Shown: one piece after another, positions 18,235 to 63,071 of the stretch | How positions within the stretch are numbered: the first letter of the stretch is position 1 | How the letters are laid out: each line of letters opens with the position of its first letter | Sequence record: PV340851.1 | DNA length: 64,000 bases | Strand: one strand, 5' to 3' | Program-made: the position numbers and the translations under genes | The notes under the pieces: model-generated | The model's database searches: none | What the model was told of the DNA's origin: nothing | Seen by the model: the letters and a program-made list of their open reading frames with translations, nothing else

Positions 18235-18549
18235 ATGTTATCTACCAAATACAGACTCAGGTTGGAGTTTATCTGTAAGAAGATCGCTAACAAAGAAGAA
18301 GTAAAACTGGAGGATATGATTTGGGCAGAGAAAATTGCTAAACAGTATACAACTGCCCGAGATTGGTTAAATCAAGCAAGACGCCATGCTGCCCAAGATA
18401 TTCAAGAAGGCACCATGGATGATTTTATGAATAGGATGGGTTTAGGTGATCCCGACCCATCCAACTATAAAACAGGTTTTGATGGTGCCGACGATATCAA
18501 TGATTGGTTCGGTAGAGACAAACCTGATGATTGGCGTCAAAGAGATTGA
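18235..18549 (+). CDS. Conserved cyanophage hypothetical protein (MLSTKYRLRLEFIC...GLGDPDPSN)
   Basis: Start refined to ATG 18235; familiar cyanophage core hypothetical. Confidence 0.75.
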   Translation: MLSTKYRLRLEFICKKIANKEEVKLEDMIWAEKIAKQYTTARDWLNQARRHAAQDIQEGTMDDFMNRMGLGDPDPSNYKTGFDGADDINDWFGRDKPDDWRQRD

Positions 18550-18677
18550 TGTATAATGTAAAATGTAGTAAGTGTGGTAAAAAAACACCTGCTAATAAGT
18601 GTCCTCAACTGTACACTACGCCCCTATGTAAACCATGCTGGTTAAATAATGGAAGAAAAAATCAAGATCACACCTGA
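18549..18677 (+). CDS. Small Cys-rich (Zn-ribbon-like) protein, 42 aa, absent from the ORF track
   Basis: MYNVKCSKCGKKTPANKCPQLYTTPLCKPCWLNNGRKNQDHT; ATG overlaps the previous TGA; two CxxC pairs. Confidence 0.55.
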   Translation: MYNVKCSKCGKKTPANKCPQLYTTPLCKPCWLNNGRKNQDHT

Positions 18678-18858
18678 GACATACGAAGAGATGAACAAGG
18701 AATTTGAGGAAGATGGCACTGCCTTCTCGATCAAAGTACCTACTCAAGAAGAAATTGATGAATGGAAATCACAACCATCACCTGCATACCAAACACCACC
18801 AGCAGTAGATATGGTGCAAGAGATGTGGGATGCTATTGGGGGACGACCTGATGGATGA
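18649..18858 (+). CDS. Hypothetical acidic protein
   Basis: ORF track; late core TTAAATA at 18642-18648. Confidence 0.65.
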   Translation: MEEKIKITPETYEEMNKEFEEDGTAFSIKVPTQEEIDEWKSQPSPAYQTPPAVDMVQEMWDAIGGRPDG

Positions 18859-19042
18859 TTTCAATCAACCTCAACAGAGAGCAGGAATTGATGATGATTT
18901 TAGAAAATTTGCTGTGAAAACACAACTAGATAATGTGTGTAAAATTTTAGGTGGTGAAGCAAAGCATTATATTTGTTCAGATAGATCAGTTACTCACAAA
19001 AGAATAGTCATCGACTACGATCATACACCCAAAGAAAAGTAA
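18851..19042 (+). CDS. Hypothetical protein
   Basis: ATG 18851 overlaps the upstream stop; its stop overlaps the glutaredoxin start. Confidence 0.65.
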   Translation: MDDFNQPQQRAGIDDDFRKFAVKTQLDNVCKILGGEAKHYICSDRSVTHKRIVIDYDHTPKEK

Positions 19043-19284
19043 TGAACGATACTGCAATCATCTATAGCAACGGAAGTCAAGAATGTGAGCGAGTCTTAGC
19101 ACTACTCAAATCCCTAGGTGGAAACTACCTTGAATATAGACTAGATGCACATTTTAGTCAAAGATCATTTGAAGACGAATTTGGACCAGAAGCAACATAT
19201 CCTCAAGTCGCAATTGGAGCAAGACATATAGGAAATCTTAAAGAAACGTTGCAACATTTTAAAAATAATAAAACGATTGTATAA
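19042..19284 (+). CDS. Glutaredoxin-like protein
   Basis: AIIYSNGSQECER, ATYPQVAIGARHIG (cis-Pro TxPQ motif); single Cys. Confidence 0.85.
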   Translation: MNDTAIIYSNGSQECERVLALLKSLGGNYLEYRLDAHFSQRSFEDEFGPEATYPQVAIGARHIGNLKETLQHFKNNKTIV

Positions 19285-19312
19285 TATCTAAATATTACAA
19301 TAAACCAAAGTC

Positions 19313-19585
19313 ATGGCAGAAGACTTCACTCTCTCGCAAAAATATGTATTTCTAGAGGGTCGTGTCGTGCGTATGTACTTTATCCAGACGATTCCATATA
19401 CTTTCGACGAACTACCTTTAATCATCCAAGATCACCCTCAGATTCAAACAGAAGCACTAGAGGGATACGATTACGACATGGAACAGTTGTATAAGTGGTC
19501 ATTGTATCTAATGGATGAAGAAATGCATCCACTAGCATTTGAGTTAAAGGTTGACAATCCAGCACTATTACCACAAGATGATTGA
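19313..19585 (+). CDS. Conserved cyanophage hypothetical protein
   Basis: YVFLEGRVVRMYFIQTIPYTFDE...YLMDEEMHP; late core CTAAATA at 19288-19294. Confidence 0.7.
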   Translation: MAEDFTLSQKYVFLEGRVVRMYFIQTIPYTFDELPLIIQDHPQIQTEALEGYDYDMEQLYKWSLYLMDEEMHPLAFELKVDNPALLPQDD

Positions 19586-20172: not shown

Positions 20173-20355
20173 ATGACACCACCAACTGCCGTTAACATCC
20201 TCAGACTTATTTCTGAGTTAGAAGGATCCTACCAACTTCTTAAGTACATGGCGTTTGAAGACGACATGAAAGCAATAGAAGAAATCAAAAAGAGATACTA
20301 TAAACTGTATTTCAAACTAAGCAAAGAAGAGCGCCAAACTAGCTCAGCTGGATAG
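20173..20355 (+). CDS. Conserved hypothetical protein; 3' end overlaps tRNA-Thr
   Basis: MTPPTAVNILRLISELEGSYQLLKYMAF...; the start could be as far upstream as 20080. Confidence 0.6.
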   Translation: MTPPTAVNILRLISELEGSYQLLKYMAFEDDMKAIEEIKKRYYKLYFKLSKEERQTSSAG

Positions 20356-20409
20356 AGCAACTGTTTTGTAAACAGTAGGTCAACGGTTCAAGTCCGTTGT
20401 TTGGCTCCA
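20333..20409 (+). tRNA. trnT: tRNA-Thr(UGU) with encoded CCA
   Basis: Acceptor GCCAAAC/GTTTGGC, D-arm TAGCTCAGCTGGATAGAGC, anticodon arm ACTGT-TTTGTAA-ACAGT, T-loop GGTTCAAGTCC. Confidence 0.95.
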
Positions 20410-20482
20410 GGGGGTTTAGCTCAGTTGGTAGAGCACCTGCTTTGCAAGCAGGCTGTCAGGAGTTCGAGTCTCCTAACCTCCA
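20410..20482 (+). tRNA. trnA: tRNA-Ala(UGC)
   Basis: GGGGGTT/AACCTCC acceptor with a G3:U70 pair, CCTGC-TTTGCAA-GCAGG anticodon arm, GTTCGAGTC T-loop. Confidence 0.96.
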
Positions 20483-20528
20483 TAGGGGAGTACAAAAGAT
20501 CTGCAAGTAGAAGCAGCGCCCCTACACC

Positions 20529-20609
20529 GCCCAAGTGGTGGAATGGTAGACACGCAAGTTTTAGGCACTTGTGTCGCAAGACGTGAAGGTTCGAGTCCTT
20601 TCTTGGGCA
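20529..20609 (+). tRNA. trnL: tRNA-Leu(UAG)
   Basis: GCCCAAG/CTTGGGC acceptor, CAAGT-TTTAGGC-ACTTG anticodon arm, long variable arm, GGTTCGAGTCC. Confidence 0.93.
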
Positions 20610-61163: not shown

Positions 61164-61753
61164 CTAAACTATTCCCCTCCCCCCTCTATACTAACAACAT
61201 AGACATAACAGATGATTTCTCTAATCTACTGTTCCAACAACATATCAACGGACATACATCCAAATCATTAAACGTACTAAAACTATTCCCTGACACAAGA
61301 CAAAAGATTGAATCACACATCAATACTTTTGTACAACAACTAGGATACAAGACAAAGTGCAAGGTAACTAACTCATGGGTCAATAAACATTACAAAGGAG
61401 ATCACGCCCAACCACACTATCATGCTAATGCTTTACTATCTGGAGTGGTATTTCTATACACACCACCTAATAGTGGTATCTTTAAACTAATAAGACCATC
61501 TCCTACATCACATAGTATATTCTCCACAGTCTTTCAATTAGATAGAAACGAAGACCAACAACATACAGAATATACTGCTGATCATTATGCAATACAACCA
61601 ATAACAAATACTATCATTATCTTCCCATCTACCCTCATACATCAAGTCTCTCCATCAGAAACAACAGAAGCAAGATATACACTCGCATTTGATGTTTTAC
61701 CTGCAGAAGATGTACTATGCGGAACTATGTCATACTATGCCACTCCACAGTGA
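61154..61753 (+). CDS. Putative 2OG-Fe(II) oxygenase (TIGR02466-like)
   Basis: SWVNKH...HAQPHYHANALLSGVVFL, IIFPSTLIHQV...RYTLAF. Confidence 0.82.
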   Translation: MEITKLFPSPLYTNNIDITDDFSNLLFQQHINGHTSKSLNVLKLFPDTRQKIESHINTFVQQLGYKTKCKVTNSWVNKHYKGDHAQPHYHANALLSGVVFLYTPPNSGIFKLIRPSPTSHSIFSTVFQLDRNEDQQHTEYTADHYAIQPITNTIIIFPSTLIHQVSPSETTEARYTLAFDVLPAEDVLCGTMSYYATPQ

Positions 61754-61798
61754 TTGCAATTGATTCTCAATAATAATACGTTGAAGTTTCTTAACACC

Positions 61799-61831
61799 TG
61801 TGGAAAACATTGTGGAAAAACCTGTGGAAAA
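61799..61831 (-). repeat. Three perfect TTTTCCACA repeats (cyanobacterial DnaA-box consensus) at a 12-bp period; candidate origin
   Basis: TGTGGAAAA on + at 61799-61807, 61811-61819 and 61823-61831, in an ORF-free region. Confidence 0.7.
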
Positions 61832-61874
61832 AGAAATGGTAATAAAAACATAGGTAAGGTGCGGTGGAGTTGTT

Positions 61875-61970
61875 GTCTTAGCGCACCACGCAACGACTGT
61901 CAATGCCCTCTGTGACACCCCAGAAAGTGGCACAAACCCCTCGGAGATACCCAGAGTCCTGCAGTATAAT
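61875..61970. promoter_or_regulatory. Divergent promoter pair sharing a central palindromic operator
   Basis: Minus strand: TTGACA (61903-61898), 17-nt spacer, TAAGAC (61880-61875). Operator: TGTGACAC-CCCAGAAA-GTGGCACA at 61911-61934. Plus strand: TATAAT at 61965-61970. Confidence 0.6.
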
Positions 61971-62026
61971 ACAGAGGTCTTCAGGGTCATTTCTGAGACT
62001 TTCCAAAAAAACAGAAAACTAAGAAA

Positions 62027-62095
62027 TCTGAAAAACTCAAAAAGTCAAAAAACTTAAATTTTAAAGATTTTGAGTTTTTCAGAAATTTAAGTTTT
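62027..62095. repeat. Interlocking AT-rich inverted repeats
   Basis: TCTGAAAAACTCAAAA (62027-42) / TTTTGAGTTTTTCAGA (62068-83), 16 bp perfect; AAAACTTAAATTT (62049-61) / AAATTTAAGTTTT (62083-95), 13 bp perfect. Confidence 0.85.
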
Positions 62096-62117
62096 AAACT
62101 TTAACCATTTTTTACAA

Positions 62118-62363
62118 ATGTTTGATTTTACAGATCAATTTGAGTCTTCTAATATTAGAAGAATTGTAGTTGGTAGAGAAGATGAGAATGTAGTTGAAAT
62201 TATGTTTAAATCTTCAAAAATGAAGTATAATTATCAAATAAAAGAAGAAAATTGGGTTAATTCTTTGCAAACAGTGATTGATAGTAAAGAATCAGTCGGA
62301 AAGTTTGTTAATTCTTCTATTAGAGAAGATAAACTAGAATTAATCAGTAAATTCTTGGTATAA
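62118..62363 (+). CDS. KTSC-like domain protein
   Basis: ESSNIRRI...VEIMFKS...Y.Y...SVGKFVN pattern. Confidence 0.55.
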   Translation: MFDFTDQFESSNIRRIVVGREDENVVEIMFKSSKMKYNYQIKEENWVNSLQTVIDSKESVGKFVNSSIREDKLELISKFLV

Positions 62364-62559: not shown

Positions 62560-62745
62560 CAACTAAATATGTGACACTAGTTGAACTGTCACACAATATT
62601 ACCAAAGAGAGGGTGATCGTGTATTGTATACATGGTTGCCCTTTTTTATTGCACACGACTGAACCTTACTTACCCAGTGGAGTTGAGTATACTTCTGGGG
62701 TTAACTTTTGGCGTTTCGTTATTAAGAATGTTTTGGCTGCCTCAA

Positions 62746-62802
62746 CCAGTTGGCAAAGTGGCACAGTGACCCCAGCGAATCGCCAAACCCCATGCTTATA
62801 AT
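62746..62802 (+). promoter_or_regulatory. Early promoter with palindromic operator
   Basis: CCAGT-TGGCAA-AGTGG(CACA) ending at 62765; TATAAT at 62797-62802. Confidence 0.7.
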
Positions 62803-62808
62803 AGGTGC

Positions 62809-62994
62809 ATGAAAACAAAACGACTTCTCTCCTCTCCCCAGACCCTGCAGGACCTGCAGGATTTCATGTTTGACTCCATGCTACCCGCTGAGATGTGCGT
62901 CGATTGGTTTTGCGATCGTTTCAACGTGTCTGCCACGGATGACGTGATAGACTACGTGATCGATGCCCATTTCGGCATGTTCGCAGACCAGTGA
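62809..62994 (+). CDS. Small early hypothetical protein
   Basis: RBS AGGT; directly follows a promoter. Confidence 0.7.
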   Translation: MKTKRLLSSPQTLQDLQDFMFDSMLPAEMCVDWFCDRFNVSATDDVIDYVIDAHFGMFADQ

Positions 62995-63071
62995 GACAAG
63001 TGGCACAGCATCTGTTGATCTGTGCCCCATCTCATGTATTGTATACACATCAACCAAATTCATTCAATTTC

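Follow-up and report, generated by a model that had tools for sequence, protein, structure and literature searches.

Three perfect copies of the cyanobacterial DnaA box stand in exact register upstream of a conserved promoter in Synechococcus phage Sf-CH3, and they are probably functional DnaA sites. The array lies in a 64,000-nucleotide stretch of sequence record PV340851.1, hereafter the window, which is the whole stretch of DNA that was analyzed. On sequence comparison, they make up the upstream module of a conserved Kyanoviridae control region of ~360 bp, which runs in the order boxes, 26-bp A/T block, GC-rich core, promoter, ~120-bp AT-rich dyad and small genes. The six-frame ORFs of Sf-CH3 include no DnaA-like ORF (best E-value 0.16), so that the boxes would most likely be bound by host DnaA. 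The first-pass annotation had proposed that the phage recruits host DnaA, and this appears to be the most economical reading given the published identity of the 9-mer, its selection across Kyanoviridae, the matching pairs at dnaA and dnaN loci and the lack of a DnaA gene in the phage.

Identification of a phased DnaA-box array

The 9-mer TGTGGAAAA occurs on the plus strand at positions 61799-61807 (box 1), 61811-61819 (box 2) and 61823-61831 (box 3), confirming the three exact copies with an exact 12-bp period noted at first pass. Boxes 2 and 3 are conserved in related phages, and box 1 is either kept or inverted. Each 9-mer reads TTTTCCACA on the opposite strand and fits the consensus TT(A/T)TNCACA, specifically its cyanobacterial form. 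The identification of this 9-mer as the cyanobacterial DnaA-box consensus agrees with the literature, in which TTTTCCACA is the consensus for cyanobacteria in general rather than for marine Synechococcus specifically, and DnaA domain IV was shown to bind the cyanobacterial box in vitro for Cyanothece (PMC4674748).

The stretch from 61799 to 61831 is the sole TGTGGAAAA cluster in the 200-kb genome. A genome-wide count, suggested earlier as a check, favored the exact 9-mer, with nine copies in the whole genome (200,096 bp) against 2.05 ± 1.5 expected from 60 second-order Markov simulations (maximum six copies), but not the relaxed consensus TTWTNCACA, with 15 observed and 18 expected. One-mismatch box variants were likewise not enriched in the window (17 observed versus 24 expected). 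The simulations never placed more than two relaxed boxes within 60 bp, compared with the three boxes observed in 33 bp. The significance lies in the phased cluster and not in a genome-wide surplus of the 9-mer. A further copy at positions 27-35 of the window, within the first coding sequence, looks incidental.

A candidate weak fourth box, AATGGTAAT, may continue the same 12-bp register at 61835-61843 on the plus strand, with five of nine positions matching. The sequence of this block is also conserved in phages that have no boxes. DnaA or DnaA domain IV proteins have been reported for some pelagiphages; no protein of either kind was found among the six-frame ORFs of Sf-CH3.

Organization of the control region

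The boxes lie in a gap (61754-62117) between SfCH3_65, a 2OG-Fe(II) oxygenase gene ending at 61753, and SfCH3_66 (62118-62363, plus strand, 81 aa, phrog_4357), the first gene downstream, whose position is matched in the related phages examined. The gap had been described as ORF-free, which holds in that no ORF within it is annotated or conserved, although mechanical ORFs traverse it. One of these, a minus-strand ORF at 61735-61893 whose FPQV/FPQC repeats arise from the 12-bp period, was rejected as a small protein because its start codon is absent from the relatives with TATAGG in place of CATAGG, an inverted box 1 disrupts the frame and whole modules are swapped. In the relatives compared, the region holds its genomic place within a block of small genes that otherwise changes rapidly.

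Directly after the boxes, a 14-phage alignment defined the A/T-rich block AGAAATGGTAATAAAAACATAGGTAA at 61832-61857 on the plus strand (family consensus AAATGGTTAAAAAAATATAGGTAA), which is present also in S-H38 and S-CREM1, both of which lack the core. The GC-rich non-coding core spans 61858-61940, contains the invariant sequences TTGTTGKCTTAGC and CGAnnGTCAA and was found at 77 IMG/VR loci. It is conserved as DNA and not as RNA structure, since the consensus fold reached just -5 kcal/mol with one compensatory pair, and a noncoding RNA gene was rejected for the core on the same values. Additionally, Rfam matched no family in the window region or in seven relatives, and a tRNA search of the region found none.

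A sequence search of the genome identified an operator-like dyad, TGTGACA-N10-TGGCACA, within the core at 61911-61934. Its sole other genomic copy lies at 62570-62593 in the next intergenic region, and the form TGTGACA-N10-TGKCACA recurs at neighboring promoters, repeatedly so in relatives, which points to transcription control.

The predicted promoter and the AT-rich dyad

A sigma-70-type promoter is predicted at 61942-61970 on the plus strand, composed of a weak -35 element (CGGAGA, 61942-61947), a 17-bp spacer and the -10 element TATAAT (61965-61970). A consensus promoter scan missed it because of the weak -35 in Sf-CH3; some relatives carry TTGACA-17-TATATT/TATTAT. In 52 of the 61 distinct relatives scored, a TAnnnT hexamer follows the core anchor at a fixed 59-61 nt (exact TATAAT in 40 of them); two of the 63 distinct relatives yielded no hexamer. 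The T, A and final T of the -10 are invariant in the 14-phage alignment. It would be an active, early promoter.

The transcript would open with a predicted hairpin, GGTCTTCAGGGTCATTTCTGAGACT, at 61976-62000 on the plus strand, and the template then enters an AT-rich imperfect inverted repeat at 62015-62095, with arms of 37 nt at 62015-62051 and 62059-62095 that are 78% complementary. The right-hand part of the gap, 61995-62117, is indeed very AT-rich as the first-pass annotation had stated (AT content 0.79), and it overlaps the genome GC minimum: the 150 bp of lowest GC in the genome are 62005-62154 (GC 0.20), starting 174 bp past box 3. A comparable dyad of differing sequence was found in 14 of 14 relatives (z -2.9 to -9.1). 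The inverted repeat is a candidate for an unwinding element or, alternatively, for an AU-rich leader hairpin. The second promoter with the same upstream dyad has no exceptionally AT-rich element downstream.

Relative to these features, the boxes precede the -10 by 135-170 bp, the array ending 134 bp before 61965. The main AT-rich element lies beyond the promoter, ~165 bp away from them, and the element adjoining them is the 26-bp A/T block. Potential promoters beside the boxes were examined on both strands and none could be established, as the candidates, among them TATAGT, CATAGG and the minus-strand TTGACA-17-TAAGAC, are weak or not conserved.

Conservation of the boxes and exchange of the upstream module

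Boxes were present in 11 of 16 related cyanomyophages that were fetched. In the phages that bear them, the 9-mers are perfect and the 3-bp spacers vary (cat/acc, agt/acc, act, agc, ctt/acc). S-RIM32, S-PM2 and S-CAM3 carry an inverted TTTTCCACA in place of box 1 at a slightly altered distance, and in S-CREM1 the inverted box is located further upstream. Perfect boxes with variable spacers and inverted copies form the pattern expected of an asymmetric site recognized by a monomer. In order to sample independently of the boxes, IMG/VR contigs were chosen by the core, and 29 of the 58 distinct core-bearing contigs classified had boxes; when the same loci were cut slightly differently, 63 distinct sequences resulted, of which 29 likewise had boxes. 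In these 29 sequences, 60 of the boxes are perfect and 14 have one mismatch; six of the variants are the canonical consensus TGTGGATAA, five change position 9 and only three change the TGTGG core. Judging by this pattern of conservation, selection acts on the boxes in many Kyanoviridae genera. The proposed check of conservation in cyanomyophages succeeded in that the boxes are perfect in about half of them, but the other half lack boxes.

The latter half of the relatives have the same core, promoter and AT-rich dyad and carry either a TTCTCAATAAG / TTGAGAATCAATAA palindrome module or neither module. Since these phages keep the core, promoter and dyad, the boxes are not essential to the function of those parts, and the palindrome module found in their place suggests that they serve as a regulatory input that can be exchanged. 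The boxes and the palindrome module are alternatives in most relatives and do not co-occur. DSL-LC03 carries both, with TTCTCAATAAG / TTGAGAATCAATAA copies and seven perfect boxes over ~600 bp of non-coding DNA, a density that is oriC-like. In Sf-CH3 itself, a single copy of GATTCTCAATAATAATA at 61762-61778 on the plus strand resembles the palindrome module. Overall, the boxes look like an exchangeable input module.

DnaA boxes beside a second repeated motif, as in DSL-LC03, are also a feature of the plasmid and phage-plasmid origins P1 oriR, F, pSC101 and RK2, and the 61762-61778 copy beside the Sf-CH3 boxes gives the same two-motif likeness. The plasmid origins combine initiator iterons with DnaA boxes; in most cyanophage relatives the two modules are alternatives. 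A Rep-type initiator was not identified in the cyanophage, and we know of no initiator for it.

Bacterial chromosomal counterparts of the box pairs

The tandem pair TGTGGAAAA-N3-TGTGGAAAA was found at no fewer than 120 bacterial genome loci. Of these 120, 23 lie at most 2.5 kb from dnaA, dnaN or yidC, for which the chance expectation was estimated at <1, and among the matches listed, three of the four cyanobacteria identifiable by name have the pair near one of these genes. The dnaA/dnaN loci with identical 3-bp-spaced pairs span several phyla. The layout of one inverted and two direct boxes, as in the phages, is common to many bacterial loci, and in at least 14 cases the pair immediately precedes dnaA and points toward it. 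At three loci the pair is situated in the interval from dnaA to dnaN and faces dnaN, corresponding to the A/T-block side in the phage. A DnaN search aimed at the oriC of the host gave filamentous cyanobacteria only, among the 120 matches listed. At the level of sequence, these comparisons show the phage boxes to be equivalent to chromosomal DnaA-box pairs.

In cyanobacteria, box arrays at oriC and in dnaA/dnaN regions share the 9-mer TTTTCCACA, co-oriented with 3-bp gaps, and the Oscillatoriales dnaA-dnaN spacer cTGTGGAAAAaccTGTGGAAAA has the same 'acc' spacer as the phage. In contrast to these arrays, that of Sf-CH3 occurs in a lytic T4-like phage by a sigma-70 promoter and small phage genes, without dnaA or dnaN nearby and with its main AT-rich element ~165 bp away, and half of the related phages do not have the boxes.

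These results bear on the alternative that the boxes are bound by some other protein, phage-encoded or host, and match the DnaA box by coincidence or mimicry. The alternative module in relatives does show that other factors can act at the same position, and the genome shows no enrichment of the relaxed DnaA consensus. However, the boxes match perfectly the 9-bp consensus that DnaA binds, the tolerated variant is the canonical TGTGGATAA, both orientations are used, identical 3-bp-spaced pairs occur at dnaA/dnaN loci of several phyla and no DnaA domain IV homolog was found in the phage. We consider a different binder unlikely.

The chromosomal pairs also raise the possibility of a bacterial-type origin, in which DnaA on the boxes would open the adjacent A/T block at 61832-61857 itself and load helicase. 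The phage boxes are co-oriented and no more than 3 bp apart, in agreement with the box component of the basal unwinding system (PMC8287927). The candidate weak fourth box followed by an A-rich run, and the orientation of the three pairs facing dnaN, would be in line with such an arrangement. The strand polarity and register of this run could, however, not be matched to DnaA-trios, defined as at least three NAN repeats (consensus 3'-GAT-5') within ~16 bp of a box on the correct strand; its A-rich strand has the reverse polarity of that in example L130, and any A-rich sequence readily supplies NAN runs. The A/T block is, moreover, equally conserved in phages that have no boxes, and the phage encodes its own helicase and primase. 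Opening of the A/T block by DnaA is very improbable on this evidence.

A possible role in replication or transcription

The leading model, which we hold tentatively and as a whole rate somewhat short of probable, is a phage origin composed of a promoter and an unwinding element and modulated by DnaA. Host RNA polymerase would fire from the conserved promoter into the easily melted AT-rich dyad, while host DnaA would dock on the co-oriented boxes in 12-bp register upstream. The bound DnaA could then modulate promoter firing or aid opening, and the start of phage replication would thereby be tied to the state of the host initiator. An origin function of the region is plausible by analogy with known origins because the sole box cluster, the nearby AT-richest dyad and a conserved promoter reading into that dyad occur together. 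Both a conserved predicted -10 and an adjoining downstream AT maximum, as expected for a promoter with an unwinding element, were found. DnaA binding and any role in replication are inferred here from sequence.

Several observations speak against an origin. Boxes are missing from roughly half of the relatives that share the core, promoter and dyad; the main AT-rich element is set apart from the boxes, in contrast to the abutting element of oriC; the recurrence of the core dyad at neighboring promoters is a sign of ordinary promoter control; and an AU-rich, hairpinned leader ahead of a small gene requires no replication role. GC skew, which is monotonic with transcription direction across the genome and shows no turning point at the region, is uninformative as an origin signal. 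To our knowledge, T4-like phages supply their own helicase and primase and have no known need for DnaA, and T4 itself does not use it.

The closest likeness to the leading model is provided by T4 oriF (uvsY) and oriG (gene 34) and by the T7 primary origin, where a promoter also reads into an AT-rich unwinding element and an R-loop serves as primer. Only some T4 middle promoters serve as origins, and the second Sf-CH3 promoter without an AT-rich element parallels those that do not. Purely by analogy, R-loops might form in the Sf-CH3 region. The T4 origins differ in that their middle promoters are MotA-dependent and have no DnaA boxes. The role given to DnaA in the leading model is borrowed from ori-lambda and pR, where host DnaA stimulates a phage promoter and transcription from it activates the origin (cited in PMC8477408). 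Lambda differs in using its own initiator O with iterons and the host replisome, whereas the cyanophage encodes a T4-type replisome.

The same evidence can be explained if the boxes are purely a transcriptional operator, through which host DnaA would activate or repress the early promoter or an unrecognized nearer one with no role in replication, tying expression of the small early genes downstream to the DnaA state of the host. The stimulation of lambda pR by DnaA is a phage precedent (cited in PMC8477408). Inverted and direct boxes like those of the phages stand upstream of dnaA and point toward it at 14 or more bacterial loci; autoregulation of dnaA is expected at box layouts directly upstream of this gene. 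Half of the relatives swap the boxes for a palindrome typical of dimeric regulators, DSL-LC03 having both, the core has an operator-like dyad common to neighboring promoters and the -10 is strongly conserved. The layout seen upstream of dnaA was found in the phages, but the overlap or adjacency of boxes and promoter hexamers that marks DnaA-regulated promoters was not. The boxes lie at about -135 to -170 from the promoter, a long distance for occlusion or direct contact, and no consistent promoter consensus adjoins them on either strand. A purely transcriptional role also leaves unexplained why the AT-richest, dyad-symmetric 150 bp of the genome are located here. We regard it as possible but doubtful.

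A third role for DnaA-bound boxes is suggested by T5, for whose injection-stop region an attachment to membrane-associated DnaA has been proposed (bioRxiv 10.1101/866236). The Sf-CH3 array resembles this region in belonging to a lytic phage, in being conserved non-coding DNA within diverging genomes and in its 3-bp-spaced box pairs, and the function of either is putative. The T5 boxes lie in large inverted repeats of the first-entering terminal repeat and about half are non-consensus (bioRxiv 10.1101/866236), whereas those of Sf-CH3 are direct, perfect and internal (61.8 kb of 200 kb) and stand upstream of a promoter; no large inverted repeats of the T5 type were found around them. By this comparison, the array could be a tether to membrane-associated DnaA or a sink that titrates DnaA from oriC in the manner of datA. 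T5-like phages hold conserved 3-bp-spaced pairs in a non-coding region that is not an origin (bioRxiv 10.1101/866236), T5-like Salmonella phages were among the pair matches, and the number of boxes per cell would be multiplied by phage copy number. Three boxes per genome nevertheless make a small sink, the exact 9-mer is just mildly enriched elsewhere in the genome, half of the relatives have no boxes and the boxes sit within a promoter region instead of large inverted repeats as in T5. T4-like genomes are circularly permuted and so have no fixed entering end. A sink or tether is quite improbable, and titration of DnaA that blocks host initiation, as also put forward at first pass, has little support.

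Significance of the host-initiator array

The DnaA-box element has apparently not been described before for Kyanoviridae: a literature search turned up no study that connects DnaA boxes with cyanophages, and the paper describing Sf-CH3 does not mention the region. T4-like cyanophages kill a large share of marine Synechococcus. A conserved array for the host initiator, flanked by a conserved promoter and by the stretch of the genome that melts most easily, offers a concrete target for studying where and how these phages start replication and how their early program reads the state of the host. The relatives in which another module occupies this position, roughly half of them, offer a natural comparison.

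A broader and rather unlikely extension is that Kyanoviridae use host DnaA as a sensor of host state that gates a transcription-primed origin or an early switch through an exchangeable module. The activity of cyanobacterial DnaA tracks growth and the cell cycle and, in S. elongatus, light and photosynthetic electron flow. If this extension were true, related phages would read different host signals through one conserved core, some by DnaA boxes, others by the palindrome for another factor and DSL-LC03 by both, and DnaA sensing could partly explain the light dependence of cyanophage replication.

Finally, lytic phages may exploit DnaA more often than is recognized. Tandem pairs with 3-bp spacing also occur in non-coding DNA of unrelated lytic phages (T5-like, Streptomyces and Microbacterium phages), and many uncultured viral contigs likewise hold tandem DnaA-box pairs 3 bp apart.

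An array of DnaA boxes in an intergenic region of Sf-CH3

Sf-CH3 is a T4-like cyanomyophage of Synechococcus sp. WH8102 with a sponge as isolation source and a genome of 200,096 bp (PV340851.1; the window covers positions 1-64000, and window and record coordinates are identical). The gap at 61754-62117 belongs to a long + strand run of small genes, most of them unnamed. It is flanked by a 2OG-Fe(II) oxygenase gene (SfCH3_65, ending at 61753) and SfCH3_66 (starting at 62118; 81 aa, phrog_4357, function unknown). The first-pass annotation had described three copies of TGTGGAAAA at an exact 12-bp period in this gap and an AT-rich stretch to their right, and both were recovered: the copies start at 61799, 61811, and 61823 (61799-61831, + strand), and 61995-62117 is 79% A+T. 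The lowest-GC 150-bp window of the genome is 62005-62154 (GC 0.20), and the second-lowest (62308, GC 0.25) adjoins it. The exact word occurs nine times on both strands of the whole genome versus 2.05 ± 1.5 in second-order Markov simulations. The relaxed consensus and one-mismatch variants showed no enrichment, and three relaxed boxes within 60 bp were found in none of the simulated genomes. A further exact copy at 27-35 is within coding sequence, and the cluster at 61799-61831 is the only one in the genome. Taken together, the exact copies, the single cluster, the simulations, and the AT content confirm the observation, and the clustering greatly exceeds what chance would give.

Identity of the 9-mers

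The 9-mer, proposed earlier as the cyanobacterial DnaA box, matches the published consensus TTTTCCACA, which conforms to the general DnaA consensus TT(A/T)TNCACA and to which binding of DnaA domain IV was demonstrated in vitro for Cyanothece (PMC4674748). The intergenic region is kept across many Synechococcus myophages of different genera, among others Syn1, S-RIM44, S-RIM32, Sf-CH11, Sf-FR1, S-PM2, S-CAM1, S-CAM3, S-H38, and S-CREM1. Relatives with boxes have perfect 9-mers and variable 3-bp spacers; S-RIM32, S-PM2, and S-CAM3 carry an inverted TTTTCCACA instead of box 1, four or five bases away, and S-CREM1 has an inverted box further upstream. An IMG/VR scan was anchored on the invariant GC-rich core downstream of the boxes in order to keep the sample free of selection for boxes. 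Boxes were present within ~170 bp upstream in 29 of 58 distinct core-bearing sequences. When the same loci were trimmed slightly differently, there were 63 distinct sequences and the number with boxes was still 29. In these 29, 60 boxes are perfect and 14 are one-mismatch variants; six of the variants are the canonical consensus TGTGGATAA, five differ at the last position, and only three affect TGTGG.

The pair TGTGGAAAA-N3-TGTGGAAAA was found at at least 120 loci in a bacterial genome collection, against a chance expectation, by our own calculation, of ~17 in 596 Gb of random sequence. Among the 120 loci listed, 23 are at most 2.5 kb from dnaA, dnaN, or yidC, gene identities having been checked with Pfam. 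In at least 14 loci, the pair immediately precedes dnaA and is oriented toward it, often with an inverted box ahead, the same layout as in phages S-RIM32 and S-PM2. The pair falls between dnaA and dnaN in three of those listed, one of them cyanobacterial. In a dnaA-dnaN spacer of an Oscillatoriales cyanobacterium (4508-4580 of L024), the box pair is followed by TGTGGAAAAgaatacattaa, which resembles TGTGGAAAAgaaatacattaaaaaac in phage S-H38; the likeness may be chance, or may hint that part of a host oriC gave rise to the phage module.

A profile built from 19 DnaA proteins of the bacterial pair loci, searched at full length and with domain IV, had no match among the six-frame ORFs of Sf-CH3. 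Four lines of sequence evidence, namely the consensus, the pattern in relatives, the bacterial counterparts, and the lack of a phage DnaA match, thus identify the 9-mers as DnaA boxes and make host DnaA the most economical candidate binder. The boxes are probably functional DnaA sites, and in view of the same evidence binding by a protein other than DnaA is improbable.

A modular noncoding element

The boxes are one module of a longer conserved noncoding element. They are followed by a 26-bp A/T block (61832-61857; family consensus AAATGGTTAAAAAAATATAGGTAA), which is retained even in phages that lack the boxes and in phages that lack the core. The GC-rich core (~61858-61940) contains the invariant words TTGTTGKCTTAGC and CGAnnGTCAA, and GC is ~0.58 across 61858-61964. 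An RNA gene or a coding sequence was rejected for the core because it is conserved in sequence and not in RNA structure, no Rfam family matches it, and its indels are not multiples of three. Inside the core is a dyad, TGTGACA-N10-TGGCACA (61911-61934). Its general form, TGTGACA-N10-TG(G/T)CACA, has two copies only in the 200-kb genome, at 61911-61934 and 62570-62593, in adjacent intergenic regions, the second copy 660 bp downstream of the first and each ~52-54 bp before a -10-like hexamer. Relatives carry between one and three additional copies in the intergenic regions that come next; the dyad is found at 2378, 2659, and 2916 of L005 in S-PM2 and at 1568 and 2773 of L011 in S-CAM4. It looks like a candidate operator common to a set of early promoters.

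A sigma-70-type promoter is predicted downstream, with the -10 at 61965-61970 and a weak -35, CGGAGA; some relatives have TTGACA or TTGCAA as the -35. Among 63 distinct sequences, 61 were scored and two were without a hexamer found. In 52 of the 61, TAnnnT occurs at a constant distance of 59-61 nt past the core anchor, and 40 of these are exactly TATAAT. Relatives (e.g., L263, L266, L270, L284, L324, and L329) also show two direct repeats of 7-8 bp with a 10-bp period, 10-30 bp upstream of the -10 and overlapping the -35 position and spacer. Both copies vary together between phages (CCCTCAGA; CTCGGAG, twice in Syn1; CTCGAAG, twice in S-PM2; ACTCGAAA), and the Sf-CH3 pair is degenerate (CTCGGAGA / CCCAGAGT). 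The leader of ~140 nt is mainly one long, imperfect inverted repeat, whose arms lie at 62015-62051 and 62059-62095. Because a comparable dyad of different sequence is present in all 14 relatives examined, the symmetry itself is under selection, be it for an RNA hairpin or for a feature of the DNA.

Boxes are missing from roughly half of the relatives that share the core, promoter, and AT-rich dyad. Such phages carry two or three copies of the palindrome TTCTCAATAAG / TTGAGAATCAATAA in alternating orientation (~1460-1530 in L007, L008, L009, and L012; ~975-1010 in L333), or a third type in S-CAM4. The form of the palindrome module suggests the operator of a dimeric factor, and it possibly resembles a Fur-type box. 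Sf-CH3 retains one copy just left of the boxes (61762-61778), and DSL-LC03 has both modules. Since half of the relatives carry other modules instead, the boxes seem to behave as an exchangeable, dispensable input.

Possible functions of the element

An origin and a regulatory region both fit most of the evidence. We tentatively favor a DnaA-assisted, transcription-activated origin, in which the conserved predicted promoter would fire into the most AT-rich, dyad-symmetric DNA of the genome and DnaA at the boxes would be an upstream helper, as in the transcriptional activation of ori-lambda. The only box cluster of the genome lies beside this DNA. T4 oriF and oriG and the T7 primary origin combine a promoter with a downstream unwinding element and R-loop priming, and the Sf-CH3 promoter leading into the AT-rich dyad has the same architecture. 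The other promoter that shares this dyad operator has no such AT-rich element, which recalls the T4 middle promoters, only some of which act as origins. Additionally, DSL-LC03 has seven perfect boxes across ~600 bp of noncoding DNA, a density closer to that of an origin than to that of a simple operator. However, the boxes do not adjoin the main AT-rich element, GC skew gave no origin signal in Sf-CH3, and T4-type replisomes are, to our knowledge, not known to need DnaA. An oriC-like origin that unwinds itself at the boxes is the least probable reading, and a sink or tether is also highly improbable.

Purely transcriptional control is somewhat less probable than the origin, but it would suit the relatives in which another module replaces the boxes beside an intact core, promoter, and dyad. 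The boxes are also located where regulator sites would be expected, and the same layout is found upstream of bacterial dnaA genes. However, they are 135-170 bp from the predicted -10, and no promoter nearer to them was found.

DnaA boxes in other phages

Among phages, lambda is known to have DnaA boxes, as are P1 and plasmid-type origins. As in Sf-CH3, T5-like phages have box pairs 3 bp apart in conserved noncoding DNA, in the injection-stop region; a comparative study described these pairs and argued that they are not the origin (bioRxiv 10.1101/866236). In a BLAST search with the pair, ~110 of 185 records were cyanophages; T5-like Salmonella phages, Streptomyces phages, and Microbacterium phages (pair at ~position 343) were also matched, and in Streptomyces phage Faust, TGTGGATAAaccTGTGGATAA lies within noncoding DNA that extends over more than 1.3 kb (L334, ~122.7-124.5 kb). 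A separate IMG/VR scan for the pair matched at least 117 viral contigs of diverse kinds, many with four to eight boxes. The tandem pairs 3 bp apart in long noncoding regions of unrelated lytic phages, together with these contigs, suggest a wider, little-studied phage use of DnaA sites. No mention of cyanophage DnaA boxes was found in open-licence papers and preprints, so that an earlier mention is possible, and the paper on Sf-CH3 is silent about this region. Phage control DNA with sites for host DnaA is known, but on this basis the putative sites described here appear to be new among T4-like cyanophages, and their modular architecture is distinctive.

Other features of the region

A single inverted perfect box, TTTTCCACA, is located just beyond the window at 64880-64888 (880-888 of L254), 22 nt ahead of the SfCH3_73 start. 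The gap there is again long, at 468 bp, and also includes coding-looking sequence that is not annotated and a terminator-like hairpin. A cluster at 20333-20609 consists of three tRNA genes: Thr(TGT), Ala(TGC), and Leu(TAG). In the S-PM2 record (AJ630128), tRNA genes for Thr, Ala, Met, Asn, and Leu are annotated at 18506-19333 (768-1595 of L005), overlapping protein genes and the conserved intergenic region; these features appear misplaced, since ARAGORN finds no tRNA there. Finally, the 512 bp at 62560-63071 have no annotated gene in the Sf-CH3 record and include an ORF of 61 aa (62809-62994, + strand). At 62814-63000, its DNA shares 78-83% identity with annotated hypothetical genes in S-CAM3, S-CAM1, and S-BM3, and the ORF is probably an unannotated conserved small gene.
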